Source: Dimorphilus gyrociliatus (lineage: Eukaryota; Animalia; Annelida). From it: DNA of 46,775 nucleotides. The stretch lies in assembly GCA_904063045.1 (NCBI GenBank), contig CAJFCJ010000064.1:50879-97653 (forward strand), given 5' to 3'. Made by a program: the position numbers and the translations under genes. Below are positions 3,605-46,775 of the stretch, one piece after another (position 1 is the stretch's first letter; each line of letters starts with the position of its first letter). The notes beneath the pieces were generated by a model, which was not told the DNA's origin, made no database searches, and saw only the letters and a program-made list of their open reading frames with translations.

Positions 3605-4022
3605 AAATCTTTGGACTAATATCATATGTTTGCTAGTACTTGTGGACAAACTTGAGGTTCTATTTGGACCAGTACTTTTGTGTGTTGCTAAATGAGTATT
3701 ACAGATGACTATGGTTGGGAGTAGAGCCAAAAAATTGAGGAATAATTACTTCAAAATGGAAGAATCAGCTTGGAAAGGTTCTGAAAAAGAAGTTTCTCCT
3801 GATACAAAAAAGATCTTTTACATTGATGAAAATCTTCAAAAATTGAAACATTTTCTCCCATAATCATTTCACAGAATATTGAAATGTTTTTGGATATCTT
3901 TAAGCAAGAATATTATAAATATAAATTTTGAAAAAGGAAGAAATTGGGGTGAAAATGGCATGAATCTTAAATCTTCCAAATCTTAAAAAAAACATCAGGA
4001 GAGTTCAATAGCAGAGGATTTA

Positions 4023-4807
4023 TAAAGTGGACAACATGTATATATGGATGCCATAAATTTTGATAGGCCAATTTTTAATTAACAGTTAAAATTGTTTGTC
4101 CCATGCAAATTAGTATTTTTTGTCTAAATTTATAAAGAAAAAGAGTTAAATTGACATAATATTGAAAAAAATTGAAGAAAATGATAATATTTTTTGAAGA
4201 TTATTAGCAAAAATTTTTAATAATTTTCATAAGTTTTTTCTTTAGTTGGCTGTTTATCAGAACATCGAGTTGACATCTGGTTTGACATTCAAGAAACTGA
4301 AAGATAACAAGCAAAGAGTGACAACAGCAAAGATATTAAAGGAATTAGAAGTAGATGTAAGCATAAGAACAATACAGAGGGAGCTGAAAAGACAAAATTT
4401 CAAATATAACAGAGTCAGACAAAGAACTGATCTCACCTCCAAAGATTAAGAAATGCTCCTATGAGGTTATCAACAGAAATCCACTCTTGTTGCCAGGCTT
4501 ATATGGGGGAATGGGCTGTAGAATAAGCAAATGTATAGAAAGAGAGGGTGGGCACATACAAAAGTAGACCAAAAATTTAACAATTGAACATTGTTCCAAT
4601 AAACATGTCGCGCGGCCAAATAAGAAAAAAACTCAGAAAACTATGGAAATTTCTATAAAAAAAATATGTAAAAACGTACCTAACTGCTGTTTTAAAGAAA
4701 TTTATATAAAATTGCAAGATTAGCCTATTATTAGCCTTTTTTCATCACAAAAAAGGTTTTGGCCTATAAAAATTTGAGGTGTTCCAACATACCTGTTGTC
4801 CACTTTA
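4023..4807 (+). mobile_element. Internally deleted Tc1/mariner-like element
   Basis: Imperfect TIRs TAAAGTGGACAACA.. / ..TGTTGTCCACTTTA, flanked by TA on both sides (4021-22, 4808-09). ORF 4246-4449 has the Tc1 HTH-like string TTAKILKELEVDVSIRTIQRELKRQNFKY. No DDE domain. Confidence 0.85.
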
Positions 4808-5210
4808 TACATTTTCGGAACTGTGTAGTTTATATTTATGTTTAGAAACAGAATGTTACAAGGTTCAACACTTAAGAGGGCTAATTGAATTATAACTTGG
4901 TCAAAGCTTAACTGATAATTAAAGATGAACCTTAAAGATGACTAACTAAGCCTATGTTTGGCTAAATGTTATTGTAATTTCTTGAGCAGGCTCTATAAGA
5001 GGTACACATATCAGTATTTGTATAAAATAATATAGTTCAAGTATAAAATATAACCAAAGTTGTACACCACTGAATACATGCAACTGATATGAAAAGTGTC
5101 ATTCTATCAGTATTTATATCATAGATGTCGCTAGTGTTTATTGACTTCATTTAAAAAAAGATTTAAATACTAGTATTTATCATGCAATATGCTTAAGTGT
5201 ATTTAATGAT

Positions 5211-7359
5211 TTAATAGGAAATAGTTGCAAATTTATACAATCCTTCAATTTTGATATTTGGGTCAATTTTCAAAATTTGTAGAGAAATAATGTTCTTTAG
5301 ACATCTATATCTATAAAGTATTTTATCATCAAGGGTCATCATATAACCATTTTCAAAACATTGTTCATTAGACTTTTCATGTTCAGCAACTACTACAACA
5401 TCATTTCCTTTCAATTTCTTACCAACTATCACACCAATTTCCATTGTATTATTAATATATAAACTGGAAACAATTATTCTAGGTGAATTTAATTGTTGGC
5501 AATCCTCTATAAATTTATTAGCAGCTACAAAATCTATAAAAAAAACAATATTATGTGATGTTTATCAAAAAAAAGAACAAAAATTATTAGAAATCATTCT
5601 TAACTGTTCATATAATTATTTTTTAATTGTCCATAAAATTGAACATCATCAATTCTTATATTACATTTAGCTAGAATAGTTAATTTATTCATTATTACTC
5701 CTAAAAAATATCCACAATTTGTCATTTTTCCTTCAAAATTTGTAGTCATTTCTAATAAGGCTTCTGTGTTCCTTTCATTAAAAAACTTCATTTCAACTCC
5801 TTTTTCTATTAATTGATTGTCAGTTTCAACTGTTGAAAAAGAAGATATTTTATTAACTTATAGAAAACAATGATTTTGAAGAATAATGTATTTTTCATTA
5901 CATGTTATGCAAATTACATCAAGAAAATTTTCTATTGTATTTATGGTTAGAATATCATTGGCTTTCATTTGAATACTTCCAGAGAGATATGGTATATCAT
6001 TTTTCAACTTGGATAAAACATGACCTTTTTGTTCATAATGAATATCTGGAAAGGAATAAAGAATATTTTAAATGTTATCTTTAAAATAAGTACATTTTTT
6101 TTTGTTGAACAATTGATTTTCTTTGAAATTCACTAAAAAGTTCGCCATTTTGGTTTTTTTCTTATTTTTTAAATTTTATATTTGATAGATGGTTTATGTC
6201 GTTGCCTAAGTGATTCAATTGTATGGAAAGTATACTTACAATTTGTTGAAAGATTTATATCTTCTCTTTTACGATACAGAAAAATATTAGCTATTGGAAG
6301 ATAATTTTCCAAATTTCCATTTTCAAGTTCAGATTTTATAAGAACATATCTTCCAAGTAAATATTTTGATTTAGAACCAACATATGTTGTTGGAACATAA
6401 AAGAGACTGGTTTTTATCCGATCCAATAGATATTTATTTGAAATTTGACCACAAGTGAAAGGTAATTCACTTACAAATATAGCAAAGTATTGCCTTGTAG
6501 GAACTGTAATTTATTTCAATATATATAATAATAAATTAAGAATCAGCTTATAACTTACTATTCTCATCAGTTCTATCAATTAAAATTGTCCTTATCTCAT
6601 AATATTTCAATAGATCAATTCTAATAAATGGTTGGGTTCCAATATATTTCCCAGAATTAATAAAGGTTGTATATAGCCTATCAGTAAGCAACTTAACATT
6701 AGGATTTGATACATTTGAAATGAATAATTCTGTATTTTCAAGTGATAATAATTTTTCATCTGAAAAAAAAAGTAAAAATGATGACAAGATTTTCTATTAA
6801 AATTATTACCCGAATCTCTAATTAAATTTCCTCTTATTCTCACTTCTTCTATAATCAAAAATACTCCAAAATATGCTTGTTGCAAAAATACAAAATTTCC
6901 AGTACAATTACATAGTTCACAATGAAAATTTTCATCATTATACAAAGATTTTCCTGTCACAATCTTTGAATAATTAATACACAATTCATTATTATCATGC
7001 AATTGATTTTCGGTATAAACAAGAAAATTTCTTAGACTATCTAAAAATTGTAAATTTTAATAATATCTCATTAAAATTCTATTTAAAAAAAAACCTTGAT
7101 ATTCTCTATTATAGAAACACATTTCTGTAATTCTATAATATCCATTAAGATCAACAGTCCACCATCCATAATTAAAATCTCTGTCTCTTGCATATCCAAC
7201 ATTTGCCCCACCTTCTACAGCATTTATGGCTAAATCATTGAAATGTGTTGTACGCTGATATGCATCACGAGAATGAGCGATATCTTCATCAAGTTTTATG
7301 TAACTTTGAGCAATTGATAAAATATTATAAAGAAATGAATAAAGATAAATCAACTTCAT
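5211..7359 (-). CDS. Secreted F-type lectin (FTP/fucolectin)-domain protein, about 6 exons, reading frame appears open
   Basis: Signal MKLIYLYSFLYNILSIAQS. FTP motifs AYQ..AINAVEG..GWWTVDLNGYYRITEMCFYNR..LRNFLVY..IEEVRI. A second degenerate FTP-like unit (IRIDLLKYYEIRTILIDR..GRYVLI..IANIFLY) and two further unassigned exons follow. Splice phases were consistent when joined by hand. Confidence 0.75.
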
Positions 7360-9003
7360 TCTATGGTTTTTCTCTCTTCTCTTTCTTTTCTCTCTCTCTC
7401 TGTTTAAGAACAATAAAAGAGAAATGAGAAAAAAAAAACTTTCTTGTTCTCCAATTTAATGATTTTCAATATTTACTATAGAATTTCCATGAAAAACTTG
7501 TATCTTAGATAAATTATTCAAACATTTTGATGAAAAAAAACATTTATAAAGTTCAGACAATTTTCTTTTTTATTGAATTATTGAAGTATTTGTAAAGACT
7601 AGAAGATTATTGCTTATTTAAAATATAATATTAATCTTTGTTAAAATATTCATTATATAATTATAGAATTTTTAAATATATATTGAATTTCTATCTTGTA
7701 TTTTTTGTCTTTTAACAAGGACTGATCTTTAGCATTGTTAAGGAGAGACAATTGTAAATAAAAAGACACCTTTTCCTAATCTATTACTTATAGATGATAT
7801 CCATTTTTCATTCAGATAATCATTTAAGTATTTGATACTGTTTTGTCAACACATTGAAAATTAGTTTTTGTATTATATTTCTTAAAATAGTCATTAGAAG
7901 GTAAACCTACTGTTAATTTAATTCTTCTTTAACACAGAAAATCACAAGAAGTAGTTTAATAAAAATTATTATAGCCGAATCTTTCTCACTTTTGACAAAA
8001 GTTTGTCCAATCACCTTTTTCTTCTGTTGCAAGTTTACTTGTGCCAAGTCTTTTGTTAAATAAAATATATCATTTTTTTTTTGATTTTTTCACCTTGTTC
8101 ATAGAAAGGAAAAAGATTTTATATCTGGTCATATTTTGAGCAGATACTATCTTTCCAAAAGGAAAAAACTGCACTTTTCCAATAGAACCAGACAAATTAA
8201 AGATTCTTACTGTACTTTGTTGAGTCATTTTGATAAAGTTTTTTATGTTTTTCAATGAAAACCATCTTTTGTGAAGAGATTTAGTTGTTATAACCTGTTA
8301 CTGTATACATAGAAGTATTGTCATATTGATATTTGGGAAATTGAATGATGGAACTTTAGAAAGAATTTTATTTCATAAGAAATAGATTTTTTGACCATAT
8401 TAGATGGAGCCACTATGGAATTGACAAAGCTGGTTAGTCTCTAATCTGTAAACATAGATTGAACTGTATTATTAGATTGAAATTCATTTACTCAATACAT
8501 ATTGTAGCTGGGGCACAGAAAAATTTTGCTAAATGGATCCCCTATGATTTTAATCATGATGAAAAGGAGGTGAGGGTGAGTCATTGTATTGAACTATTCC
8601 AGGTATCTACAAAGACAGGTGTTGCCACCTGCTGGTCATGAAGCATTTGTTTAGGGATTATATTTTAGATATATCATGTATTGTTTTTATGTTTTCTATT
8701 TGAATTAGTACTTTGGTTAATTGGTAAATGATTGGAAAGGACAAATATGAGAAGTTGGAACTGGTCAAAAAGTCAACAATAGTTGAGTTTCACTTTCTGA
8801 TACCCTTTAGCTGGCCACTAAATTAATGTTCTTAAGTGGTTACAGTAAGACTAATGTAGTTCTATAATTAATGCTAAATTCATTACATTTATTTGTAAGA
8901 ATTTTTTATGCTCACCTGCATTGCAGCATATACGTATAATAGAATAATGCTTTTCCTTTGAAGAAATTGATAGAATTTTCTGATAATCATTGTCTTCCAA
9001 TCC

Positions 9004-9098
9004 TTTTTGTGAGCTATGTATAAAAGTGTGTCAATGGGTATTATTATTATTGACAGAAGGAAATTGATTAGTATTCTGGGAGAAGTTCTTGCCCAAGA
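9004..9098. repeat. 95-bp internal direct duplication (second copy 10765-10859; mirrors 15068-15162 and 13307-13401)
   Basis: TTTTTGTGAGCTATGTATAAAAG..GTTCTTGCCCAAGA repeated at offset 1761. Confidence 0.9.
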
Positions 9099-9141
9099 TA
9101 TAAAATCAGATTATTTTATTTAAAAAATCTTCAAAATATAG

Positions 9142-9318
9142 GTAACAATTTCTGCTGGTACTCCACTAAACTGCAATATCAATTCAAGAGTAACTGTTAC
9201 TGCTTTTGTATCCTCTCCTGAAAATTGTGATGCTGATAACACTGCCCTTACCCAAATTGGACCTAATTTCCAATGGATCAAAAAGACTGTAGAAAGTGAA
9301 GAATACTGTGTAGACTAA
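9142..9318 (+). CDS. Terminal exon of a catalytically dead serine-protease homolog
   Basis: After an AG acceptor: VTISAGTPLNC..VTAFVSSPENCDADNTALTQIGPNFQWIKKTVE, which parallels GDSGGPLxC..GIVSWG.C..VYT.V..Y..WI. Possible upstream exons near 8140-8210 and 8500-8600 are unresolved. Confidence 0.5.
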   Translation, partial: VTISAGTPLNCNINSRVTVTAFVSSPENCDADNTALTQIGPNFQWIKKTVESEEYCVD

Positions 9319-9755
9319 GGTAAAAATTACTTTTCAGTAGTGCTCTTATTTAATTCAAATAAATTCACTACAGCTTAAGCATCTAAAGAATGGTAACCCT
9401 GATAAACTTTCTGGTAACATAACATAGTTTGCGCACTTTAGCTCACTAGTTCTGGCAAAAGATATACACACTCTATGAAGAGATTCCCTGAGTAAATTGC
9501 TCAATCTTTGATTAAGGAAACTTTATTTAAAACAATATCTATTAAAAAATATAAATATCCATATATGCTTAATTAAGTAGTTTGTCATTGTTGTTTTGCT
9601 CAATTTTGCCAAACTCTTTCTCATATACTTTCATAGAAGTATTCTAACTACTATGTTATAATTTATTATAAGGATAAAATTTTATAAATATTAGTACAAG
9701 AGAATATGTCCTTCTGATAAGTTTGTTTTTTTCTAAATTGTGCTCTTCATCTTTT

Positions 9756-12700
9756 TTATGCAAGGCTCATATCAGTGGAAATCTGCTCTTTAATCCAATC
9801 AAAGTAGGTCGAAACCTAAAAAATACATAATAAAAGATGTAGATGAATATAAATGCAATTCTGGTAAAATGTCTTTTGTACACTCTGAAAATTGTTAATT
9901 TGGCTTGATGCCTGTTTCCCTAAAGGTACTATTTGCTTCTACCCATTCACTCATCTCAGTGTCCCTGATATTATAATCAAGTTAAAAGTGATACTACTCA
10001 ATACTTAGGAGAATATTAATCACTATAAAAAGATATACATCTTTCAGTGTTTAACAAAGACTTTTAGCCAGTTCTGTAAATATATAGAAGATGATATACT
10101 CTTGTATAAACACTCATTTTCTTAATGCAACCCCTATATCCCCAACTTGCCAATCCAATAAGTCTCCAACGGTTATTGATTTTGCAATGCAATGGTCCAC
10201 CAGAATCTCCCTAAAAATGTAAAAAACTCATTAAGAATAGAAGATTAACAAAACGTTTTTGCCAAAAAAAAGAATTCATATTAGGATAAGAACCCTAAAA
10301 TGTAATTTGGGAGCATTTTGTCTTAATTTTAAAGAAAAATTCAAAAATTACATACAGTACAAGCTATTCCTTGTTCACTTTTAGATTTTCCAACACAAAT
10401 CATTCCTGGATATTTCAGGAGAGTAGAAGGAAACATTTCTTTGTTACATTCATCTTTTTCAAACATCTGTTGTTTTACTCTGTATAGAAATCTAGCGACA
10501 GCTAAAAAAATAGATAAAAGTATTTAATATATATAGTAATGTACATAAAAAGACATTTAGATACAAACTTTCACTGTCCAAACATCCATAGCCACTAATT
10601 TCACATTCATATTTGTTTGTAATACCATAATCTCTTTCTGGCAAGCAAATAGGAAGTATATCTGGTGTGAATTCTATTTCTTTTATCAATTTTAAAACAG
10701 CAATATCATCTTGTAGAGACACTCTTCTATAATTTTTATTCATATAAATCTTTTGAACTCGGATTTTTTGTGAGCTATGTATAAAAGTGTGTCAATGGGT
10801 ATTATTATTATTGACAGAAGGAAATTGATTAGTATTCTGGGAGAAGTTCTTGCCCAAGAAGAGAATAAATGATCAGGATTGATTACACTGTACAAGAAAT
10901 TTATTATTAATAAGAACATTTTTATCCTCTTTGAAAAGGTGTATGTCATAGAAGAAAACAATGAAAACTTTCAAATCAATTTATAATTGTACTCAAAAAT
11001 CAGAAGTTGTACTAAAAAAATTTCAAAATATTTTATTTTTTTTTAAAAGATTGCAATTTTGCTTTTGACAATTGTGGATATTCAATAAAAAACAATCCAA
11101 TGCAACCATTTGAAAGGTTTAAAATGTTTGATTCAAAAATTTTTAATTGTACATAGTTTTAAATTTTTTTTTTGTAAATAAGAAATAATATTTGTCTTTG
11201 TTTTTTGTTTTTAGCAAATGTTATGGTCATTTCTAGTGAAAATTTAAAATTTACCCAAAAACGATAAGAGCAATTGTGTTGAAACAACAATTAACTTGAA
11301 TTTATTCAAATAGATAATAAATCAACTATTTTAAAACTTTTCATTCATTATCATATTAAATTTTTTGGCTGTGGAATAGATGAGTAATAGAGTTTTTTTT
11401 TGTGGGGTAGATGAGCAAAAGGAGAAAAACATTTAATGGCTGGACAAACAATTTTTTCTATGATGAAACATTTCTTTGTAATGGCCTGTAAAATGATAGA
11501 AATCAACACTAACTAATAAGTTATAAATGTAGAAAAATGAATGACAGATGACACTATAATGCAATTTATGCATTTTGTACAACTTTGGTTATATTTTACA
11601 TGCTTGAACTCTATTATTTTATGCAACATATACATGTACATCTTAAAACCTACGCAAGAAAATGCTATAACATTGGCCAAACATAAGTCTGATAAGTCAG
11701 CTTGAAGGCTCATCTTTAATTACCAATAAAGGTTTGGCCAAGTTATAATTTAATTAACTTGCCTAGGGTGTGGCCAAGTTATAATTCAATTAACCTTCCT
11801 AAATGTTCAACCTTGTAACATCCTCTTACTAAACATAAATATGAACTACACATTTTGGCAACTGTAAAGTGATGATTGGATGTCAGAGACAAACCTCAAA
11901 GTATATAAATCCTCACTATTCTCATTTGGCATGCAGCTTCCATCTGGACCCAAGGACCTGGGAAAATCATCTGGAAACAACCTCCACTGGAACCATCCAT
12001 CTACTCCTCAACATTGGAAGACAGTTTGGTAATTTGGCAACCTGCTTTTACAAACTATCTACTCTGCTATCGAACTCTCATATTGTTACTTGCTTAAGTA
12101 TTATTATTGCGAATAAACCGTTTTAATTTAAACATTTGTTTAAAGGTTCGAGTAGAACCAGTATTGTTATAACTTGCAAACGCATAGATTTTGCCAGCAA
12201 GAGCAGTACAACATTAACTTACGTATCAAAATCTATACAATGTACTGCTGTTAAAACATATCTTGGATGGATTAACACAGCTCCTCAATATTGCCCATTT
12301 CCATGAGAGATGTAACCTTATTTTGAATTGAATCATCTAAAATTCAAAACTTTACATGAAAAAAATATAATTCAAGTAACCTGCCACAGTACATTCTCAA
12401 CATTTGTTCTTTCTCCTCCAACAATATATTGCTCTCCTCTACCATACTCCAAACCACAGTATGTCATATTCAAGAAATTTGTTTCTAATATATTAAGTGA
12501 TTTATAGTGAAAAAATGTAAAAAGTGATAAATACTTATTTCATCTTCAACATATAAACAATTGTGCATTTGAATAAGAATGCTTTGGTTTTGATTAACTG
12601 AAGCAGACACTCCAATTTCAATCTAAAATATGAAAATGGAATGACTGAGAGAAGGAAATTAATGGTAATTTATATCAACTTGTGAAAAACTCCCAAGTAA

Positions 12701-12906
12701 ATTGTATTTATAATAGAAAATTTCATCTTTTTTCTTTTCAATTTGGGCAGTAGGATACTGTGAAAGGTTTGAGTCATCATATAGAACTCTTAGCTTGAAT
12801 AAAACTTCAGTTGTAGAAAACTTTGACTAACTGCTTAATGTTATAAATATGCAATTATTATTAGTGTTGACAATTGTTTTTACAACTGGTGATATTAGTG
12901 TAGAAC
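9756..12906 (-). pseudogene. Trypsin-family (S1A) serine protease pseudogene: 5' exons in the IR1 spacer, 3' exons in the left arm, interrupted by the 916-bp insertion
   Basis: Exon 12484-12381 reads CGLEYGRGEQY-IVGGERTNVENVLWQ. Exon 12316-12223 reads GAVLIHPRYVLTAVHC (His 12242-12240), with a 1-bp deletion and TGA replacing Cys at 12287-12285. DDIAVLKL..LPICLP..CEISGYG lies in 10743-10560, GDSGGP starts at 10210, and the last exon VSTYFDWIKEQ stops at 9756. Confidence 0.85.
11261..12176 (+). repeat. 916-bp segment, copy 2, inserted in the protease intron and flanked by CAAA (11256-59, 12177-80)
   Basis: Identical ends to 1407-2322. Both flanks belong to one interrupted intron. Confidence 0.9.
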
Positions 12907-13278
12907 TTTGGGTAAATTTTAAATTTTCACTAGAAATGACCATAACATTTGCTAAAAACAAAAAACAAAGACAAATATTATTTCTTATTTACAAAAAAAA
13001 AATTTAAAACTATGTACAATTAAAAATTTTTGAATCAAACATTTTAAACCTTTCAAATGGTTGCATTGGATTGTTTTTTATTGAATATCCACAATTGTCA
13101 AAAGCAAAATTGCAATCTTTTAAAAAAAAATAAAATATTTTGAAATTTTTTTAGTACAACTTCTGATTTTTGAGTACAATTATAAATTGATTTGAAAGTT
13201 TTCATTGTTTTCTTCTATGACATACACCTTTTCAAAGAGGATAAAAATGTTCTTATTAATAATAAATTTCTTGTACAG

Positions 13279-14410
13279 TGTAATCAATCCTGATCATTTA
13301 TTCTCTTCTTGGGCAAGAACTTCTCCCAGAATACTAATCAATTTCCTTCTGTCAATAATAATAATACCCATTGACACACTTTTATACATAGCTCACAAAA
13401 AATCCGAGTTCAAAAGATTTATATGAATAAAAATTATAGAAGAGTGTCTCTACAAGATGATATTGCTGTTTTAAAATTGATAAAAGAAATAGAATTCACA
13501 CCAGATATACTTCCTATTTGCTTGCCAGAAAGAGATTATGGTATTACAAACAAATATGAATGTGAAATTAGTGGCTATGGATGTTTGGACAGTGAAAGTT
13601 TGTATCTAAATGTCTTTTTATGTACATTACTATATATATTAAATACTTTTATCTATTTTTTTAGCTGTCGCTAGATTTCTATACAGAGTAAAACAACAGA
13701 TGTTTGAAAAAGATGAATGTAACAAAGAAATGTTTCCTTCTACTCTCCTGAAATATCCAGGAATGATTTGTGTTGGAAAATCTAAAAGTGAACAAGGAAT
13801 AGCTTGTACTGTATGTAATTTTTGAATTTTTCTTTAAAATTAAGACAAAATGCTCCCAAATTACATTTTAGGGTTCTTATCCTAATATGAATTCTTTTTT
13901 TTGGCAAAAACGTTTTGTTAATCTTCTATTCTTAATGAGTTTTTTACATTTTTAGGGAGATTCTGGTGGACCATTGCATTGCAAAATCAATAACCGTTGG
14001 AGACTTATTGGATTGGCAAGTTGGGGATATAGGGGTTGCATTAAGAAAATGAGTGTTTATACAAGAGTATATCATCTTCTATATATTTACAGAACTGGCT
14101 AAAAGTCTTTGTTAAACACTGAAAGATGTATATCTTTTTATAGTGATTAATATTCTCCTAAGTATTGAGTAGTATCACTTTTAACTTGATTATAATATCA
14201 GGGACACTGAGATGAGTGAATGGGTAGAAGCAAATAGTACCTTTAGGGAAACAGGCATCAAGCCAAATTAACAATTTTCAGAGTGTACAAAAGACATTTT
14301 ACCAGAATTGCATTTATATTCATCTACATCTTTTATTATGTATTTTTTAGGTTTCGACCTACTTTGATTGGATTAAAGAGCAGATTTCCACTGATATGAG
14401 CCTTGCATAA
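13279..14410 (+). pseudogene. 3' half (Asp and Ser exons only) of the protease, duplicated in the IR1 right arm
   Basis: DIAVLKL in the 13423 ORF, GDSGGP at 13956, last exon 14351-14410. No IVGG or His exon upstream on this strand. Confidence 0.85.
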
Positions 14411-14847
14411 AAAAGATGAAGAGCACAATTTAGAAAAAAACAAACTTATCAGAAGGACATATTCTCTTGTACTAATATTTATAAAATTTTATCCTTATAA
14501 TAAATTATAACATAGTAGTTAGAATACTTCTATGAAAGTATATGAGAAAGAGTTTGGCAAAATTGAGCAAAACAACAATGACAAACTACTTAATTAAGCA
14601 TATATGGATATTTATATTTTTTAATAGATATTGTTTTAAATAAAGTTTCCTTAATCAAAGATTGAGCAATTTACTCAGGGAATCTCTTCATAGAGTGTGT
14701 ATATCTTTTGCCAGAACTAGTGAGCTAAAGTGCGCAAACTATGTTATGTTACCAGAAAGTTTATCAGGGTTACCATTCTTTAGATGCTTAAGCTGTAGTG
14801 AATTTATTTGAATTAAATAAGAGCACTACTGAAAAGTAATTTTTACC

Positions 14848-15024
14848 TTAGTCTACACAGTATTCTTCACTTTCTACAGTCTTTTTGATCCATTGGAAAT
14901 TAGGTCCAATTTGGGTAAGGGCAGTGTTATCAGCATCACAATTTTCAGGAGAGGATACAAAAGCAGTAACAGTTACTCTTGAATTGATATTGCAGTTTAG
15001 TGGAGTACCAGCAGAAATTGTTAC
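14848..15024 (-). CDS. Mirror copy of the protease-homolog exon
   Basis: Reverse complement of 9142-9318. Confidence 0.5.
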   Translation of the reverse strand, partial: VTISAGTPLNCNINSRVTVTAFVSSPENCDADNTALTQIGPNFQWIKKTVESEEYCVD

Positions 15025-20580: not shown

Positions 20581-20720
20581 GCAATTGTAGGAATTTTGTT
20601 TTCATCGCAACCATAGTCATCTGTAATACTCATTTAGCAACACACAAAAGTACTGGTCCAAATAGAACCTCAAGTTTGTCCACAAGTACTAGCAAATATA
20701 TGATATTAGTCCAAAGATTT
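20581..20720 (+). repeat. Dispersed repeat family B (~140 bp)
   Basis: Shared ATTGTAGGAATT..CATTTA.CAA..AAAGTACT..CAAATAGAAC. Related copies at ~31047-31165, ~15405-15480 / ~8686-8761, ~41321-41411 / ~27570-27660, and truncated at 3605-3717. Confidence 0.7.
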
Positions 20721-33092: not shown

Positions 33093-33772
33093 ATGATTTG
33101 GCCTACTGCTACACTAATTGTATCATCATTCATCATCATCATCAGTGGTAAGGAAGTTCTCTTCTTCTACAGATTTCTTAAATATTTTAAGCATGTAATT
33201 TGGTGTTTAGATTGTTCATTGAATCATTGTTGTCGGACTGGTTTCTCTTTAAAAGGGAAAGGCTGCTATAAAATTTTCAATATCTTGTCCACTGGTGATG
33301 AAGCTAAACAATCATGTGAAAGTCAGGGCTATACTCTAGCTGGTTTTTATCTTCAAGAGAATTACGAAGCTGTAATGTCATGGTTTAATTCTGGAGGTGG
33401 TATTTTCTTTTCTTTTGAGTCTAGACTAACTTTCCTTGCAGAGAAATAATGAAATTGATATATTTCCATTCAGCAATTGACAGCAGATGCATATTAAATG
33501 GAGCATATGATCATTCAAAAAACCTTTGGTTCTGGCAAACAAGAATTGGCCCTGTTGAAGTTAACTTTACTTGGGCACATTTCGCTAACAGTGAACCAAA
33601 TGGTGTTAGTTAATCAACCATTTAAAATTTTTTAATTTTCTTCAAGCTTCTTACCTGTTGCAGATTAATCTCCCGCATTATCTTGCTGTTTATAGAAATC
33701 CACATTATGCCGATTATGGACTCGATGATTATGAAAAAACGTCTTCGGCATCATTTTTCCTCTGTGAAGATG
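33093..33772 (+). CDS. Secreted C-type lectin domain protein (at least 4 exons, 3' end not resolved)
   Basis: Exons 33093-33147, 33211-33396, 33474-33602 and 33647-33772 are in phase. CRTGF..GCYK..EAKQSC..GYTLA; GAYD..WFW..W..SEPN; FFLCE. Confidence 0.8.
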
Positions 33773-35173: not shown

Positions 35174-36097
35174 TTAAATGTTGTTGTTGTTGCTGTTGAC
35201 TGAAGGGTAAACTTTCAGTCTAAGAATATTGCTGAAAATCATCTTTATATGAGAATTGCTTATGAGTACTATAACTGAATTAGTTACTGTTGGCAAAATT
35301 ACAATATATTGCATTATCAGTAATTTCTTATAGGATAGTACTCTCATATTTGAAAATATAGTGCCAAGGAGAATTATGTAACATATCCATAGGAAGATGA
35401 CAAAGATTTGCTTACACAATGTTGCCTGAGAAGATTTTGATATAGATTGAATGGTATGCAATTGCTTCTCTGTGAATCTTGCATGCTTTTTAGCCAATTT
35501 CAACGTGAGAAAATGAAATAATAAAGATGGCAATGCTGGACCAACAAAAAATAATACAAATACAATAAAAGAATCAATTTCAACTGAAATATAACCATAG
35601 CAGATTGTTAATTTTTTTTTTGGTCTAAAAATAGCATAGAATGAAACAACAAAACCAAATGCATTGATGAACAATGTTAACAGTATCTTGATTTTTGAAC
35701 TGCAATAATAATTATACTTAAAAGGATACCTTATTGAGAAATATCTGGTAGCAAATAGGCCCAAAAAGTTCATTTGAGAGAGAATACTTCCTATACCAGG
35801 AATTATAATTAATATTATACAAATAGTTGGTGATGGTATGAGAAGATGGCCAAAAATATGGCTAATATTCACAAAAAAGAATGATGATACTATTAAGAGA
35901 TGATTTAACATCAGGCAAAAGATAAAATGTCCACAAGATTTCCTTACGCATTTGTATTTTAAGAAGAGAAAAATCACCAAACATGATAAAATTAATCCAG
36001 AAATGACAAGGATAAAACTCAGTGTTTTGAGGAGGATGCTTTCAAATTTATTTAAATCAAATCTTATAGAAAAGCCAGCATCAGATATGTTAGTCAT
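35174..36097 (-). CDS. Intronless rhodopsin-like 7TM receptor (probable chemoreceptor-type GPCR), 307 aa
   Basis: Seven hydrophobic segments, TM3 ATRYFSIRYPFKY (DRY-like), TM7 PTVTNSVIV. Confidence 0.85.
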   Translation of the reverse strand: MTNISDAGFSIRFDLNKFESILLKTLSFILVISGLILSCLVIFLFLKYKCVRKSCGHFIFCLMLNHLLIVSSFFFVNISHIFGHLLIPSPTICIILIIIPGIGSILSQMNFLGLFATRYFSIRYPFKYNYYCSSKIKILLTLFINAFGFVVSFYAIFRPKKKLTICYGYISVEIDSFIVFVLFFVGPALPSLLFHFLTLKLAKKHARFTEKQLHTIQSISKSSQATLCKQIFVIFLWICYIILLGTIFSNMRVLSYKKLLIMQYIVILPTVTNSVIVLISNSHIKMIFSNILRLKVYPSVNSNNNNI

Positions 36098-37342
36098 TTA
36101 TTTTCCTGCTTAGTCTTCCTTCCATAAACTGGTAGAGAATTTATTATCATTAATCAATTTACATTATCCTAAGTGGTAAAGTATGGCTGTTATCAATGTT
36201 TATACAGTTTTTAAACATTTCTCTCTTAATGGGAATTATCTGTGTAATACTTCAAAGTGTCTTTGAAGATGACTTTAGGCAATTAAGTATCAGTGACTAA
36301 CTAGATCCAATCTTTTCATTATCACTCAGGGTTAGGTTTTCAATCCTAGCCGTTTTCAACTCGTTCTATTTCCTCTCATTTAATAATTTCTCATAAATTG
36401 AAATCAGATCATCAGCTTCTCTCTTTAAAAGAATGAACAAACAAATAAACAAACTTAGAATGGTAAAGGTAGCATAGCTGTTGTTTACCACACGACAAAC
36501 TATGCTACATTTCAATTAATCATTGAATTACTTTTCAATTCATTTATTTCTTCTTATATGATATTGTTGATTAGTGACAGATGTGTCTTGTAACTTTTCC
36601 TTGCAGATGAATTACTATCATTTATGGCCTTAGCCCTTACCTACTTCACTTTATTTTTTGCCTAAGGGTCTTTTAAGGGTTAGGCCATTAAAAAGAACTT
36701 TTCACTCAATTTCTGAAGGCTGTTAAAATAATTGCAATAAAACAACAACCTCAATTGTTGTAAAGAATATATCTGTCTTTTGTACAGAATGTATGCTACT
36801 ATAAAGACTATTTATTTTATTTATATTTTAAAAATCAATACTTCAGTGTCATCATAGTTTTTGGCTATGTTTATATTTTACTTATTGTTCAAAAGTCTAA
36901 AAAACAATTAAAGAAAATATCTGGAGATAAGAGCTTTAAGAGAAATCTATCAAAATCTCTCATTTCCATTATAATCACAAACTTATTAAGCTGGATAATA
37001 TTTTCAATTTTAGGTTTTCATATCATTATAATAATGATTTTCTCATATTTAAATATTTTTCCAATGCTTTCTAGGCCTATTATTATTTTTAGCAAATTTG
37101 AATAAAAAAAATGACAATTATGTCTTGATTGTTACATTTTTATCAATTAATTCTTTAATTAACCTGTTGGCATTTTTACTAAAAAGTCAATAGCCCTTTT
37201 AGTTTCTAATAGTTTTAAGTAAAATATATTTTTCTATATCATCATTGTAAAAATGGCGACATTTTTATAATTATTATCAACTTTTTTGACAATTTCTTTG
37301 GGGACATTTTCTGTCTGAACCGTATATTCAGAGAAAACAGGG

Positions 37343-37408
37343 GTTGTTGAAAACGCCAACTGTGCCTGTCGAAAACGCCCACTATCCTTGTTGAAAACGC
37401 CCAGTGGT
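37343..37408 (+). repeat. Three 22-bp units containing TGTYGAAAACGCC
   Basis: GAAAACGCC at 37349, 37371 and 37393. A related single motif is at ~27430-27447 / ~41533-41550. Confidence 0.75.
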
Positions 37409-37852
37409 GTTTAAAGACTGTATATAACTAATATTTTTGGTTTTTGATTAAAGAACCTTAATTATAAATATAGTTATAAATTTTTATTCTAAAGATTACT
37501 TATTTTATTTTATTAAACCAGAGATTGTCAAAATGATTGCTAAAACTCATAAATTAAATTCTTTCTATTTATAAAAAAAATTCTTCTTTACCAGTTTTTA
37601 TTTTTTTAAAGATAATCTTTCGCCATCAATAATTCTACTTCCTCTCCAAATATCACAAAGATACAGGTAAGGTCTAATTATTGTTTTTAGATATTTTTTT
37701 GACTAATATGGGTGTACACTTATGAACTATATTTTATAGATATTTTATAAATGATACTTACTATATGGTAGAAGTGTTGAAGTAGATGTTGCCTCCAGGG
37801 TAGATGGTACTGAACTGCTAGAATCAACCCCTTTTATAAGCAAAGGATAAGA

Positions 37853-38209
37853 TGTTACATAACAAACATGTTGACAACAAAAACAAGTGTTTATTTACAT
37901 AAATATGATGTAAGAATTGACTCTTGATGGGTAACCTACACAAAGTTGTTGTTGTTTACATGACTATTGCATAATATGATAACCCTTGACCCTGTTTGTT
38001 ATGAACAATCCTTATCTGGGGTTAGACCCTTGTTGTTGACAACCAAGGCATAAACAACTGATAAGGAATTGTATAAAAGCAGGGCGTAGGCAGTAACAGG
38101 CATTCAGTCCTGAATCAACTCCCTTAGTGAACAGGTCTAGTATTACTTTACAATAAGGTTATATTATTCTTACGGTTTGATTCTATATTCATCCTTCATC
38201 AATTCTACA
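37853..38209 (+). mobile_element. Possible solo LTR
   Basis: TGTT..ACA ends, TATA-like GTATAAAAG (~38071), AATAA near 38152, higher GC than flanks. No TSD found. Confidence 0.3.
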
Positions 38210-38253
38210 TCTCTCTTCTAAGTAGCTGACTCCTGGTTGCGAATATGCAAAGA

Positions 38254-39855
38254 CATAATCATTCTCATGGATTCCCAAGCTTCCCCTTAATAATTAATAA
38301 ACCTGAATTTTTCTAAATCTTGCCTGAGACCAATGAAATGAACATCCAGTTAAGACAGCATCAGGCCCTATATTTTGTAAAGTTTTCCAAACACCCTTTT
38401 CATAGTCAAAGACTAATTTCTTAGGAGCACAATTTTCACCTAAATCCTTCACAGCCTTAAAAATTTAACATGATTACTTATTAGTAAGAATATTTATGAA
38501 ATGTAATTCTTACCTGGAAAAGTAGTTTATATGCTCTCTTTTTTTTAGAAGACAGAAAAGAAAAAAGCAATGGAACTTGCTTAAGCTGTCCATTTTTTTT
38601 CAAAAATACATGAATAGAGTACATTTGAATGAAAGGTTCATTGGCAATCTTAAAAGTACCATCAAGGTACCAAATTTTCCCCTTTGACAATAGCTCCAAT
38701 TGATGATTTGTTGCAAAGATAATGATCCTCTCATTATTTATATTTATATCCTTCTTTAAAAATTCAGGAGGAATGAATGTCATATTTTATCATTGGGGAC
38801 AATAGGCCTGTTCTTCCTTCTATTCCAATTTGCCACTTCTTTACAATTAATTATATTTGGTAAGTTTGAAGTACTAGAATACTTGACAAGAACATTTTCA
38901 GCAATTCTTTTACCTGAAGAATTTATATCACTAGAACAATTGTCTTTGATTTCATTTCTTATATGAATCCTGGTTTCTAAATTTTTTATTGGTGAATGAC
39001 AATGAATGTTTGTCCCAATTGCAAAATTGCTTCCTTTTTGATTGATGCTTGCTTTACATTTTCTTTTTTTGCTTCTGACAGAACAAGTCCATACAGTAGA
39101 TGTTTTTGTTTTTAATTTAATATTATATGAAAAACCTTTGTGAAAAAGTAAGTCTTTGCCTTTTTGACTTCCATGTGGCAGAATTTTAAAATGAAAATCG
39201 TCAGAAGAATTTTCTTTGGCAGATGTTTCACTTTCAAAAGATTCTTCCTCAATTTTTTCAGATTCTATATACGCATTTTGAATTGTTTCAAAATTTTCAA
39301 CTTCAATTTCATTATCATATTCAATATCACTTCCATTAATGATATTTCCTTTGTCAACCTTTGTGTTTATACTTTCATCATTATTGTCATTGCTACTCCA
39401 TGATATAGATAATCTCAATTCTTCTGTCAACTCTTCAGTACTCTTTGCTTGTCCTTGATTATTGTCTCCTTTCTCATCAATTTTTAATTTTTCCTCAGTC
39501 ATGCTGTTATTCTCCTCAATATTCTTTTCTGGATATTCAACAATTGCTTCTTCCTTCTCATTAAGTTTTGCAGTAGAATTACTTTTTATTGGTACAATTT
39601 CCCTGCATTTTTTTTGGCTCATCAATTCTCTTTAACATCACAAAACAGGTTTTTTTTAGTTATTTTATAACAAATAAAACAGAGTGGTGATGCTGTTGAT
39701 GAATCTGGAAGAAAAAAAAACAGTAAATGTTTTTCAAATAGAAGATAGTTCAAACCATGCAGACATTTTATATGACAAATATGCAGACACAATGAGCATT
39801 GGCCTTTTATTTGCCTACCAACAAATTTATCATTGCAAATAGAACACTTGTCCAT
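38254..39855 (-). mobile_element. MULE transposase 2, right-arm copy
   Basis: Mirror of 29126-30797 with substitutions, an extra frameshift near 39610 and a ~78-bp deletion. Confidence 0.9.
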
Positions 39856-42800
39856 TATTCAATATTTTTTCTAAAATATTGGAGAAAAAGAAGAGCTAAA
39901 CTAAAATTAATAAATGAATTTGTCATATCATTATTATGATTATTTATGTAACAATTAGTATTTTGACAATAACATTGAAAAAAAACTTCATTTACAAATA
40001 AAATTGCTAAATTTATGTTAGATTGATTAGTAATAAAATAATCTAATAAAATAATCAAAAAAAACCTCTACAAATTAAAAATTTTGATATTACCTGAAGA
40101 GAGTGAAAATAGAAGAGAAAGTTGATATTTTGTATCTCTTTTCGTGAAGATTTCTTCATCTCTACCAGTTTTTTTAAAGTTTTGTGTTAATTTGTTTTTC
40201 AACATATATTTATATTTACATGAAAATTTCTTTACTTTATGTGTTCTTTTGATTCACGGATGTTTTCTTTCAGTTTACAGACATTTTCTTTCACTTTATG
40301 GATGTTTTCTTTCAGTTCATGGATGTTTTCTTTCGGTTTATGGATGTTTTCTTTCATGGACGTTTTCTGTCACATCCTTTCTAGATTTGTCCTTTGCTGC
40401 ATTATAATTGTATAAATCCAGTAAAATGAGATAGTTCTAGAACTATCAAATTATTAAATCTATATATTAATGAACTATATTATTCAATTAATATTGTAAA
40501 TAGCAATGTTTATATATGAATCAATAAAATATTGGGGCAAATACTTAATATGGTCACAACTAGGCAACACTGCTTAGCTCTATCAGCACAGTGTAATACC
40601 AATGCCATACCATTTGTCTATTGTAGAAAAGAGTTTACAATTGTATAAGTATAGTTATATTTTTTTTCATATTTTAACATTTAAAAGAACAGAAGAATAG
40701 AATTAGGTTTAGATCAGACAAGATGGTAAGAAGAGATACAATACTACTCAGATTAAAGAGAAATGTATACTAATTGATCCTTTATATTAATAGAAAGTTT
40801 TCCATATTTTGTTTGAAATTGAAGAGATTGAGGAATCCACTGAATGACATTCTTATTCTGCCAAATAATCTCATCTAGTTTGACCGGAAAGAGTTGTCCA
40901 TTAAAATACAATTGTATTTCATGCATATAATAATCATCTTTTAATACACCAAATAGCCTTATATTTTCTTTTGTATCATGAAAAATATATATTTTACCAC
41001 CATTTGGAAAGTACACAGATACTAAATGATAATTTGACTGAGAGAGTAGTGGATTGTTTGGAGTGAAGGGAGGGATATATTTGCACCTGTGCTAAAGTAT
41101 GAAGTTTTTCATACTGAACCTTTCTTTCTGTGAATAACCTTTTTTTCAATTTACTATAATTAGGTTTCAATGACTAAGTTGTAACAACTACAGGACAAGT
41201 CTTTCATTCATTTGTTACAGGAATTGAATGAATAAAAAAGGCTTTCTCTCTCCTTTTAAAGACATTTTTATATCTATACTTCTTTTTTTACAATATATGT
41301 ATTCTTGTAGTTTGTTGTGTTGGAATTGTAGGAATTGTTTTTTGTTGTAATTGTAGTGATCTGTACTGCTCATTTAATAATATGCCAAAGCACTGGTTGA
41401 AGTAAAAACTCCCATGTGTCAACAGGTATTAGCAAATGTGCACTTCAGTCAGATATAGATGCTGTTTAGAAAACCCTAGACTTAACTCAGTACTTTTATA
41501 TGTGGGTACAGCTGTGGAAAATGGCCATTAACCTGTTCAAAACGCCAACTACACTTAACTATTACGTATTAACTATAAAAGCTGTATAATTACATTAAGG
41601 ATAACATCCCAGGTTGGGAAAAAACATGCTCAGTGTGAGAAAAAACGTTTTAGTTAAAGGTGTATTGGGCATAATTATTGATATTTTTAATCTGAAATAA
41701 TTTTTTCATTGCTGTTTGATTGAATTAGAAAATAAAATATTAAGATTTTCACTTGAATTCAGTTCAATTTTTTATTGCATTTTATGTTCATACTATACTA
41801 CTTTGAAAGGAAAGCAAATGCATAATTTGGCCAGTGTGCTTTGTTGTCCATCTAAGTTACCTTCCACAGACAACATTAAAAAGAAACCTTCTAAACAAAA
41901 CCTAAGAAATCTATATGTTCCTGTGTTTGAACTGTTTTAAAGAAAGATACAGTAGTGTTCACATTCAAGCAAGTATCTTCTAGTTTCTATGTCAATTACT
42001 AACTGACAATATTCCAGATTAATTCTTCCCTCAAAGGCATTTAATCATTGTTACAATGCTTAGACAAATATAATTCTACTTTCTTTAGTCTACATAATTC
42101 AAACAATAGCTAACCCTAATCCTAAAGAAAATGTCTTGAAATATTCAAACTACAAACATGTCCACTGTGAAACACAAGAAAATCAAAACAACAAAATAAT
42201 AAGATATAAATCCAAGGTTGTCGACAATTACAGAGCTGTATATTTCCTGCCCTTTCAAGCAAGCAATACATGAAGCTATCCTCTGGAATGACCCTGATGA
42301 GTCTTTGTAAAGTCGAAGATGAAACTGTGGTGAGTCAACCATACTGGGTAGCCATTTAAAAGCTAAAACACAAACCCAACATATTTTCATCAATCAGTGG
42401 TAGATAATCATACTCGTCTAGAAGGTTCTTACTCTTCCAGTTTCATCTCATCAAGACAATGAAAAGTTGTAAATATATGTCTTCCAAAGTGAAAGTTTGT
42501 TTCTACTTCTTCCAATTTTGAAATGGCTGCCACCTCACTTTTCAACAACATTTTAGTTTTTAATATTATAATTCACATTTACAAAATATTTTTTCCTTTT
42601 CTAATATATATACCTATATATCATTGACCAAATTAATTTATGAAAAATCCATAAATGTAATAAAGAAGAAAAAGGTACATTCGCACTCAGGTACATTCAC
42701 ACTCATACAATACTGCTGAATAGTAAATAAAATGTAAACTTAGAAGTGAAGCATAAAAGATATTTAATTGAACTGCTTTTAGTTTAAATTCATAAATTTA

Positions 42801-43037
42801 AATATTAATAAACCGTAATATTATTGCTAGGTTACTAATAGCAATATTCTGTATATAATTTAATGAAATTTAATGCCACACATTGCATATACACCGCCCT
42901 ACACAAAACTGTCTGCTTATCTCTATCAGTGCTATCTGGGCAATGTTATAGCATTTTCTTGCATAGGTTTTGAGGGATACATGTGTAAGTTGCATAAAGT
43001 GCTATAGTTCAAGCTTAAAATATAACCAAAATTGTAC

Positions 43038-43411
43038 AAAGGCATTCTGAACATTTGACAATTCCATTATCATTTATACATTTAGCACAGTTCAATGGAC
43101 ATGATAAACAAGTTCCATCTATATATTGATTGTGGCATTTGATACAAAATGTCCTTTGGGTATGAGAATTTAAAGTACATTGAAAACAGGCTGAGGACAA
43201 GAATCACATTTCTTAGTTATAGTGTTAAGTGCAGTTCCCTTATCACAAGATGAGCAAAGTAGATTATCATTCAAATCAGCACCACAAACAACATAATAAG
43301 GTGTACATGGTGCACAAGTTTTATCAGATTTCAAACCATATCTTTTATAGCATTGTGAACAAGTAGTAGTTCCAGCATTCAGGAAACGTATTTGGCAGAA
43401 GCTGGGGCATT
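43038..43411 (-). pseudogene. Mirror copy of the Cys-rich fragment
   Basis: Identical translations for the ORF pairs 25515/43170 and 25781/43015. Confidence 0.65.
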
Positions 43412-43856
43412 CTGAAAGTTTAGAATGAAATCTTATGGCAAAAGGAGAAAATAGAAAATTAAGCATAACATACTTATGATTTTCTGATCAGTTGTCAAAT
43501 CTGCATGATGATTAAAGCATTCAGAACAAATTGGTTGATCATTTATAATGGGGGCCAACAGAAAAAAGGTTAGAGAGAGACAAGGGCTAGGTTAGGGTTA
43601 GGGTTAAACCATGCATTTGGGGACGTTTTCTGTCGTATCCTTTATAATGAATGCTGGACAAATCTTTCTTTGAGTATAATTAAAAATGTCTGTATTATTT
43701 ATGATTTTGAAAAATATTTAAGTATAGAAAATATATTTGAAAAAAAAGTGAAATGCCAAGGCTAGTTATTTAAATAGAAAAAAAAATTGAAGGATAGTTA
43801 AAGTAAAATTAAAAGCAACAATATATGTTGCAAGAGTAAGAACCTTCTAGACGATA

Positions 43857-44838
43857 CATAAACCACATCTTTCCATGAGATAGTAATTTGGCTTGACTTT
43901 GTGTAGAGAATATAACTATTCTTTCATTTTCTCTGCAAATATCATTTATCAGAAAATTATCTGGAATAAAAGTCTTGTCAAGAGTGAAGTATAAGCCATC
44001 TGGTCCTTTAGAATTAAACTGCTGCCTTGTTCTATTAATAAGTCGGACAACAGTTATTAATAAATGGAATAGCAAAATTTGATTTTGGAATTTCACTGAG
44101 ACACTTGCCAGCCAAACATTTTCCTGATGTCATTTTATCATTCTGACCACTTTCTTTTAATTTGTGTCTAATTCTTATTTCTATTTCCAGGTTATTATTT
44201 CTCTCATGAATATGATTCATTTTGCCAAGGATAAAAGAATTATCTCTTTGGGAAACTCTTGCAGGACACTTCATGGATATGTTTCTGATACTACATGTCC
44301 ATTTAACTGTGTTTCCAGTCTTTTCTTTTACAGAAAAACAGTATCCTTCATGCAAAAGGAGATTTTTTCCTTTTTGATTCATTCCTTCCAATGTTGTGAA
44401 TGCAGGGTCCATTTCATCTTTTTCTTGAATATTTGAGTTATAAAAAGATTTTTCAATTAAATTATCTTGAGAGGCATTTGCTGAATGGTTTCCATTATTC
44501 CTATGATCACATAATTCTTGTTCCTTCCCTACACTTTCATCTTTTCCATTTTTTTCTCCAGTAAAAGAGTTATCTTCAAGAAAAGTATGTCTGGAACAGG
44601 TACTTCTTTTTAATGAGACAAAACAATTCTTTTTGAAGACATCAGTGCAGGTAGAGCATAAATATACATCAGACACTGCAAATATATAGAAATAAATAGG
44701 AATGATAAAATAATAAATGCGAATATTACTTGAAATGCATTTTTTATGAAAGTTAAACTGATGAGAGCAGAGTGAGCATTTCCTTGTGAATTTTCTTTCA
44801 AATATTCTATATTTACAAATTTGACAGTAAGGAGCCAT
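43857..44838 (-). mobile_element. MULE transposase 1, right copy: retains PHD and FLYWCH, lacks most of the DDE region
   Basis: CQIC..CSLC..FHKKC..CSTC (PHD-like) and NQKGKNLLLHEGYCF..WTC..CPA..HIH (FLYWCH). Breaks just before the first catalytic Asp. Confidence 0.85.
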
Positions 44839-46052
44839 CACCTGATGAAAAATTGGAAAGTGGACATGACACAATGGTCAAATAAAGATAAAGTGAACAA
44901 CTTACTTTTTTTAAATAAATACTTTGGGAGTATGAAAGTCTTTGATGAAATATCTATATCAAAATCACGTTGTTTTAAATCAGAATTAATGGTTAAAGCT
45001 CCAAGAATAATCATTGTAGTAAAAAAAGATGGCTACCAAATATCAAAAACAGGAAGGGGACAAGACTTCCTGTAAAAGAGTATTTTTTTTTTCAAACCAA
45101 ATAATTCTAATCTTAAGTACATTTAAAAAAGTTTGAAACATTTTTTTATATTAATATTTGATTAGCAAGTCAATGTAACATTTTTTAGTACAATAAAGAA
45201 ATTGTTTCACTTTTCTAGCTTAAGAGACAATCTGTCAGGGGATGTTTTGTCAGGGGAATGTGTTTAAATCAATACAAGAGAGCCAAAAAGAAAACCTCAG
45301 TGATTAATATTCCTTGCGTATTCCTGTTTAAAGAATGCTCTTTTATATTTCTGACATTTTAGAAATAAGGAAGAGAAATGAACTGAAGAAGCCCTATCAA
45401 TTTTTCATAAATTGATTGAAGATATTTTCAATCCAAAGATTCATTATTAATCTTTCTAAACAAAATATATGCTATTATTTTGAACTTTGCAGGTATATTT
45501 ATAGAAAGAGAGGGAGATGGAGGGAGATGATAACACTTTAAAATGAAAGAATAGAGACAGTGAAAAACATTAGTTACCAAAATGTCCTTTGACAAATCAT
45601 AACCTGGACAGAAATCCCTGTGAACAAAATGTCATAAATAAATTGCAGCAATAAAATCACAAAGTCAAGTAAAATTCAAAACTTTCAGAATAGGTAACTT
45701 GTTTAAAAATTTTTTCTCCAACTGAAAAGTTCCATCTTTGAACAACTCAATTTTTTAAGTTTTTCAATTAACAAAACAATACTCTAAGAAGAGCTTGATT
45801 ATGATTTTTGATCAGTTGCCAGATAATGATGAGTGTTGTTCTAAGTTTATAAATAAATATATATAAATCAATCGCTATTGATGTCTACTTCCTGGAGTAA
45901 AGACAAAAAATTCATTGAATTTTTTTGTTTAATTCAGAGAGTATTAAAGAGTGCTCATTGATCAATTAATCGTTAAGATTTTTCCGATATTTTTATTTCC
46001 TGAATTTCTCGCATAGATTGATCATTGGCCGTTTGAACAAGTTGCGCTTGAG

Positions 46053-46775
46053 ATGATTTTTTATAAAATTTTATCATTTGCTTGTATTTTACAATTGACT
46101 AACTGTCTATTCAACATTTCTGATCAATGTAATGTTGTTGTTCATGAACGAATACGTAATAGGAAATGATGATATAACTCTAGACGAATGTACAAGTGGT
46201 AATAGTAAAAATTTTTGTTGCTTTGAGCCTGGTTATGGTTGCTACAGACCCAAATTAAGTATACCTGGCTTTACTTATAGACATGGTATGCTGACCGGTT
46301 ATGATTCACTTGGAGTAGCAACCCCTGATTTAGAAGATCCTGAAGATTGCGCAAAATACTGCTTAGCATTGCATAATTGCATGGGGTTTACAATGACAGA
46401 GACTCCCCATCTTGGAAGATACTGTTTCCCTAAAAGTAATTCTTTTTTTACAACAGCTGCTCCCTCGGCTATGCCAAATATGCTATCTTATGATAGATTT
46501 GGATTTGGCTATACCACTTGTGAACAAGGCGAATGTACAGAGACAGCGCTATATACTGGAAATGAAAATTTTGCTGGCTTGTCTTCAAAAGTGCCGAGAA
46601 AATAGTAATTGTGAATATTTTATTCTCAGTTCTGGTCTTTGTAAACATGTACAAACATGTACTATTAATAAAATTCTGTAAATAGGGTTACCTGTTCAAA
46701 TCTGTTTTGAAAGTTAAACCTCACTTTCAAGATAATTTAGAACTTTTTAACATTTTATCAGATTCAAATTCTTCT
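46053..46775 (+). pseudogene. Mirror copy of the PAN/apple-like gene, partial in the window, with several 1-bp indels
   Basis: Reverse complement of 22751-22029 with an extra A at ~46158, an extra G at ~46577 and missing As near 46670 and 46696. Confidence 0.7.

Follow-up and report, generated by a model that had tools for sequence, protein, structure and literature searches.

The window analysed here is a 46,775-nt stretch of the genome of the annelid Dimorphilus gyrociliatus (G000:C64:50879-97653), which lies on a contig of 217,657 nt in an assembly of 77,897,245 nt and 349 contigs. Two giant palindromes stand back to back in it: the inverted repeat IR1, with arms at 3605-11259 and 12907-20720, and the inverted repeat IR2, with visible arms at 22029-30797 and 38239-46775. 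An initial annotation had placed both there, had put no more than 1.3 kb (20721-22028) between IR1 and the visible part of IR2, and had found IR2 still matching at base 46775; all three statements were borne out. The reading we favour, with modest confidence, is that the palindromes are real inverted duplications, generated by template-switching repair among Dingle, Mutator and miniature inverted-repeat transposable elements (MITEs) and later homogenised. All tests were made on the assembled genome sequence. The contig continues for 50 kb beyond the left end of the window and for 120 kb beyond its right end, and the window has no N gaps, so it contains no scaffold join.

IR1 and its surroundings consist of the following parts (LTR, long terminal repeat; ORF, open reading frame):

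1..1406: left flank L, unique sequence; homology to the spacer copy begins at 1407
729-1058, minus strand: first exon of a DOMON-domain gene (Pfam DOMON, E 2.7e-15)
1407..2322 (916 nt), plus strand: direct copy of the spacer start, 100% identical to 11261-12176, made of "flank5" and the first ~600 nt of a Dingle-type LTR
2323..3604, plus strand: fragment of a Dingle-like, Ty3/gypsy-type retrotransposon with gag, protease and the start of the reverse transcriptase; Pfam RVP matches; ends abruptly at 3604
3605..11259, plus strand: IR1 left arm X1, with a Tc1-like MITE, discoidin-like ORFs and a minus-strand trypsin 3' fragment; read as the derived copy
11260..12906 (1,647 nt): IR1 spacer, with an orphan A at 11260, flank5 at 11261-11575, the Dingle LTR at ~11576-12210 and flank3 at ~12211-12906
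12907..20720, minus strand: IR1 right arm X1', in natural context at either end
20721..22028 (1.3 kb): stretch between the palindromes, with repeat units, a C43-paralogous region and the PAN gene's 3' end; may partly belong to the IR2 left arm

The two arms of IR1 are nearly indistinguishable. Over the core of the repeat (3719-11259 against 20444-12907; 7,544 nt) there were no mismatches and 9 gaps, all nine of them one-base homopolymer indels and eight of them within 5152-6752; between 8073 and 11259 the arms are 100% identical. The repeat reaches outward from this core to 3605 and 20720, and the arms differ there by one or two substitutions and by 162 nt found in the right arm only, all of them within 115 nt of the outer end. 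Judged by the other copies of the repeat family, it is the left arm that has changed near its outer junction, by a private 162-nt deletion and a private base at 3628. A search of the whole assembly (77.9 Mb) for a third copy of the IR1 arm found none, and the copy number is exactly two.

The direction of copying could be read from the LTR in the spacer. This LTR (640 nt, ~11576-12210) belongs to a family of at least 46 copies with 98-99% identity, TG...CA ends and 4-nt target duplications, and most likely comes from the young Ty3/gypsy family published as "Dingle". It is complete in the spacer (~11576-12210), and the copy at 1721-2322 ends ~35 nt before the LTR end. Only the spacer copy has the whole LTR, which makes 1407-2322 the derived copy of 11261-12176; the opposite arrangement, an insertion of the 916-nt piece in the spacer that duplicated CAAA, was rejected on the same observation. 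The spacer LTR itself may be a plain solo LTR flanked by a target duplication. A CATT repeat can be made out around it only when each LTR end is granted one extra base. It may also be recombinant, since homology to a paralogous locus on contig C120 stops exactly at the LTR, starting at 12207, the LTR border.

The same paralogue identifies the older of the two arms. C120:88477-89451 is colinear with window positions 12207-13147 at ~82% identity and crosses the point 12906|12907, which indicates that the junction of the IR1 spacer with the right arm is ancestral. At the other end, the right arm finishes within a repeat family whose units run colinearly into 20714-20877, with an internal deletion at 20720. 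From the colinearity with C120 over 12906|12907 and that of the repeat family over 20720|20721, the right arm is in its natural context on either side; both ends of the left arm are novel junctions. The repeat family in question (20572-20877 and 3605-3753) has at least 25 copies; in other loci its units stand ~180 nt apart, and at the IR1 outer arm end they abut exactly.

The junctions on the left side carry small scars. The passage from the LTR to the retrotransposon piece (2322|2323) contains a slipped 8-nt insertion, that from the retrotransposon piece to the left arm (3604|3605) has a 3-nt AAA microhomology, and the inner end of the left arm meets the spacer through one orphan base, a 1-nt insertion at 11260. 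The retrotransposon piece (2323-3604) belongs to a young family, represented in the genome by at least 40 copies that are 97-99% identical, and has private deletions of ~520 nt and ~90 nt. In the scheme we favour, repair synthesis at a break or fork would have switched template to the opposite strand a few kb away, in a microhomology-mediated process of the type of microhomology-mediated break-induced replication (MMBIR) and fork stalling and template switching (FoSTeS), or of the polymerase-theta type. At IR1 this would have added a 9.85-kb block to the left of the right arm, which would have stayed in its old context. The block would be made up of the direct spacer copy of 916 nt, the retrotransposon piece of 1.28 kb, 7.66 kb copied from the right arm in inverted orientation, and a single additional base, and it could be the product of a chain of nearby templates into which the retrotransposon piece entered via LTR homology. 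The IR1 templates all lie within 10 kb, except for that of the retrotransposon piece, and the derived changes lie no more than 115 nt from a junction.

What IR1 duplicated is largely a broken gene. The spacer segment flank3 contains the IVGG and His57 exons of a trypsin on the minus strand, with a GTAAGT donor beside the LTR, and the trypsin 3' half was matched by Pfam in the window with E values of 4e-10 and 8e-8; there is no intact trypsin gene in the window. The C120 locus has a normal trypsin gene, with the IVGG, His57, Asp102 and Ser195 exons on one strand and no palindrome. It aligns also to the left arm at 9676-10769, and this match ends at ~10770 within the Asp102 exon. The break lies inside the Asp102 exon in both IR1 arms (~10770 and ~13396), and against the intact C120 gene this novel break is a real rearrangement. 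Both arms are thus the same composite, in which an exon-truncated 3' part of the trypsin gene is fused, in inverted orientation, to sequence that once lay upstream of the gene. The apparently intact paralogous gene (L033, G000:C120:85595-89580), ~82% identical to the broken window copy, keeps the motif TAAHC; the window copy reads TAVHC.

IR2 is larger and its arms are less uniform. It is built as follows:

21702..22751, minus strand: PAN/apple-like, secreted-looking protein P0001; intact ORF of 349 amino acids (aa), PAN/apple match below the Pfam cut-off
22029..30797, plus strand: IR2 left arm X2 (visible part), with the PAN gene, a fragment of a FLYWCH/Mutator-like element (MULE) at ~23660-25432, a cysteine-rich ORF and a Mutator-like copy at 28603-30797
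30798..38238 (7,441 nt): IR2 spacer, with unique genes and transposons
31029-31950: MITE-like family in the IR2 spacer, ~935 nt
33054-33610, plus strand: C-type-lectin-like ORF in the IR2 spacer, recognised by eye only from two adjoining ORF pieces, a WxW stretch and an EPN motif
35177-36097, minus strand: seven-helix-like, receptor-like ORF in the IR2 spacer; intact, 307 aa, with no Pfam match at E<=0.01
37713-38238: MITE family in the IR2 spacer, 526 nt
38239..46775, minus strand: IR2 right arm X2', still matching at the window end, with a Mutator-like copy at 38239-40378
43830..43856: right-arm deletion junction, filled by 23 nt that repeat 26545-26567 exactly (and equal the reverse complement at 42414)
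46132-46605, plus strand: right-arm PAN copy P0002, annotated as a 157-aa product

The comparison of 22029-30797 with 46775-38239 gave pieces that are 99.3-100% identical and are interrupted by large indels, one of 590 nt present in the right arm only and three of 650, 117 and 71 nt present in the left arm only. The small differences amount to ~13 one-base indels and about two dozen substitutions, the latter chiefly in two FLYWCH/MULE transposon copies. Elsewhere the arms agree closely: 25416-28602 is 100% identical, 22029-24000 is without substitution, and the near-identity includes blocks of 3.2 and 1.6 kb free of substitutions. The 23-nt filler at 43830-43856 is a templated repair scar. As in IR1, mutations cluster at the arm edges, at 3628 and the 162-nt deletion in IR1 and at 30572-30769 in IR2 (9 substitutions and the 71-nt deletion), with interiors that are 100% identical.

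The inner ends of the IR2 arms sit in copies of a 2.2-kb Mutator-like unit that has at least 12 genomic copies. The left copy ends at family position 2798; the right copy continues for a further 15-22 nt and then adjoins the 526-nt MITE. Since the right copy extends further into the family, the left arm is ruled out as the template of the right one. This also led us to reject the IR2 part of a 27-kb "original" core that would have consisted of the IR1 spacer and right arm together with the IR2 left arm and spacer. Within the final 200 nt of the right Mutator-like copy lie the 71-nt deletion and 7 private substitutions. Most private edge mutations of IR2 fall in the older-looking arm. The reference for the family was a complete Mutator-like element of 3.4 kb at G000:C64:22046-25411, which lies 25 kb to the left of the window and ends in terminal repeats of ~200 nt made of short sub-repeats.

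The shared element at the two inner ends raises the question of a transposase-driven origin, by alternative transposition (between sister chromatids or of reversed ends) of Mutator-like elements. The membership of both ends in one Mutator-like family would agree with this. The arm ends, however, fall within the element, ~1.1 kb in and well away from its terminal inverted repeat, stand 15-22 nt apart and show no target-site duplication, and no IR1 junction falls at a Mutator end; we consider this origin very unlikely. In template-switching repair, which we prefer, the arms of IR2 would have come to end 15-22 nt apart inside a truncated Mutator-like element. Near-identity would afterwards have been held by recent origin, by gene conversion between the arms, or by both, and the transposon parts and arm edges would have gained private changes.

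The initial annotation had attributed the palindromes to serial fold-back events, either breakage-fusion-bridge cycles or repeated template switching, acting as a local amplifier of secreted, lectin and protease genes. Of the two, it is repeated template switching that agrees best with the sequence, given the microhomology, the small insertions, the 23-nt filler and the mutations clustered beside the junctions. Serial breakage-fusion-bridge cycles would be expressed in adjoining inverted duplications, and two such duplications do adjoin here. Neither palindrome is a head-to-head fusion of broken ends, since kilobase spacers intervene. These spacers, the two copies of each segment with no ladder and no third IR1-arm copy, and the retention of both outer flanks do not fit such cycles, and the duplicated trypsin is an exon-truncated fragment; as a local amplifier they are extremely improbable. 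The notion of gene amplification was overstated in any case: the IR1 trypsin pieces start inside an exon, the right-arm PAN copy reads as frameshifted, and the copy number is two. With a copy number of two and truncated trypsin pieces in IR1, the structures are not a gene amplifier; what they duplicate is mostly gene fragments.

The gene types that had been named for this amplifier held up in part. The trypsin 3' half is well matched and stands, together with weaker candidates; the galactose-binding/discoidin-like match has an E value of 0.03, the PAN match is below the cut-off, and the lectin was assigned by eye. These searches used Pfam on individual, unspliced exon-sized ORFs, and for IR2 and its spacer they returned nothing significant, the lectin-like pieces, taken separately with their exons unjoined, included. 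The right-arm PAN copy differs from P0001 by four one-base indels and zero substitutions. On this pattern P0002 would be a frameshifted PAN copy whose indels look like consensus errors and not like decay. An exact protein look-up of junction-spanning ORFs found only the two annotated PAN proteins, from the NCBI source only.

Whether IR2 is nested in IR1, as had been suggested from the closeness of the two, could be narrowed down. To the right of C64:100853 the contig has no inverted match to window positions 12001-23000. The IR2 left arm therefore ends within 18829-22028, and an overlap with the IR1 right arm cannot exceed 1.9 kb; nesting is possible only up to that length, as judged from the contig. 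A scan of all 217 kb of contig C64 found no other large near-identical inverted repeats.

The differences between the arms bear most directly on whether both arms exist. The reciprocal deletions in IR2, the 23-nt filler and the derived 162-nt deletion in IR1 indicate that the arms are two physically different DNAs. The independent deletions and divergent arm edges suggest that time has elapsed or that gene conversion has acted. While anatomy, scars and the old junction can be read from the contig directly, we infer the mechanism, the order of events and gene conversion from them.

The alternative to be taken most seriously is an assembly artefact, in which the chromosome would lack one of the two arms in each palindrome (in IR1 the left one, along with the block 2323-12176); we regard it as possible, though doubtful. 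The initial annotation had already named a chimeric contig or two haplotypes joined head to head as the competing explanation, and that rival is still live, weakened by the reciprocal deletions and the scarcity of substitutions. The extra sequence would have entered the PBcR / HaploMerger2 contig in a region dense in repeats and thinly covered, and would stem from a minor haplotype, from a variant in the population, or from molecules that were chimeric or folded back. The genome paper reports an assembly of ~78 Mb in 349 scaffolds (PMC7854359), which was built with PBcR from PacBio RS II P6-C4 reads of pooled adult females, polished with Quiver and Pilon, passed through HaploMerger2 to merge haplotypes and scaffolded with SSPACE-LongRead.

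Several observations favour this artefact and weigh against real duplications. Removal of 2323-12176 (9,854 nt) yields a clean IR1 locus without palindrome, in which every junction is natural. The extra block starts and ends in Dingle LTR or internal sequence (at least 40 copies at 97-99%) and is thus bounded by the most abundant young repeat of the genome. The outer arm end of IR1 coincides with the internal deletion point of the right-arm repeat, which a simple copy model does not predict. One-base indels number 9 in IR1 and 13 in IR2, with hardly any substitutions, as is expected of thin consensus support, and the right-arm PAN copy has its four frameshifts and zero substitutions; an arm could be assigned to five of the indels, and each time it was the IR2 right arm, for four because they break the PAN ORF and for one by comparison with family copies. 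The assembly, at 77.9 Mb, exceeds the estimates of genome size by flow cytometry (73.8 Mb) and k-mers (70.95 Mb) by 4-7 Mb (PMC7854359), and the DNA came from pooled females. Fold-back artefacts of long reads are known, some with ~2 kb between the segments, mostly in nanopore data (PMC12870357). Our evidence, finally, is the assembly itself.

Against the artefact stand the arm differences, which are reciprocal and mechanistically biological in kind, so that the arms are not copies of one molecule. Alleles at the k-mer heterozygosity of 0.16% (PMC7854359) predict ~20 single-nucleotide polymorphisms in 12 kb, and 0-2 were seen outside transposons, although heterozygosity may be patchy. Typical fold-back spacers are shorter than 200 bp, and the PacBio sets examined showed almost no such artefacts (PMC12870357). 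A whole-genome amplification step is unreported for the library. At the novel junctions, sequences unrelated to each other meet with no repeat in common, which is not what overlap-based mis-joining yields, and an artefact would need three to four separate chimeric junctions within 20 kb. In the PBcR pipeline, reads are split during correction wherever a junction is not backed by several further reads, which argues against single chimeric molecules as the source.

Real inverted duplications by template switching have close counterparts among known systems. The human rearrangements ascribed to FoSTeS/MMBIR, those of the duplication-inverted triplication-duplication type (DUP-TRP/INV-DUP) and other inverted copy-number variants (PMC10766186), likewise place an inverted copy a few kb from its template. 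They share with the present case the combination of a direct duplicate and a foreign templated piece in one block, microhomology of 0-3 nt, small insertions and mutations beside the junctions. Unlike the human cases, the palindromes of the window show no triplicated middle, have far smaller arms and are bounded by transposons at nearly every junction. The palindromes maintained by gene conversion on primate sex chromosomes, in the Hsp70 and amylase pairs of Drosophila and in hsp-16 of C. elegans also combine near-identical arms with a unique spacer, differences at the arm edges, and independent deletions with no substitutions between them. They differ in that the arm genes here are partly fragments.

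Two kinds of artefact offer the other comparison. The first assembly of Adineta vaga reportedly contained palindromes, and head-to-head mis-joins of haplotypes are said to be of a similar kind. Such mis-joins would resemble the present case in giving kilobase palindromes in a small invertebrate assembly from pooled animals; here, by contrast, the junctions are gapless in a long-read assembly and arm divergence is ~10x below heterozygosity. Fold-back and missed-adapter artefacts (PMC12870357; Pacasus, bioRxiv 10.1101/173872) share with IR1 and IR2 the inverted self-match in long-read data. Such artefacts usually have almost no spacer and arms from one molecule, unlike the spacers of 1.6 and 7.4 kb and the real deletions found here.

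If the duplications are real, a compact annelid genome actively reshapes its islands of secreted-protein genes and transposons by inverted duplication. The few expanded gene families of D. gyrociliatus are described as "locally duplicated" immune genes (PMC7854359), and these would gain a mechanism. We put forward, very tentatively, that D. gyrociliatus may make kilobase inverted duplications throughout its genome by microhomology-mediated template switching in transposon islands and keep them identical by gene conversion; the "locally duplicated immune genes" might then be in part their products, and back-to-back pairs might record complex single events. If the palindromes are artefacts, ~16 kb of the window is false, and by extension a measurable share of the assembly and of gene-family counts, which affects those who use the genome for comparisons of synteny and gene content.

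Rfam and tRNA scans of the window gave zero matches. The contig has an N block of 3,613 nt at G000:C64:162423-166035. The 526-nt and ~935-nt repeat families at opposite ends of the IR2 spacer have ~30 or more copies each, at 90-97% identity. The window as a whole has a GC content of ~29% and few long ORFs, and its gene types (DOMON, trypsin, PAN, FLYWCH/MULE and a gypsy-type protease) are animal-like.

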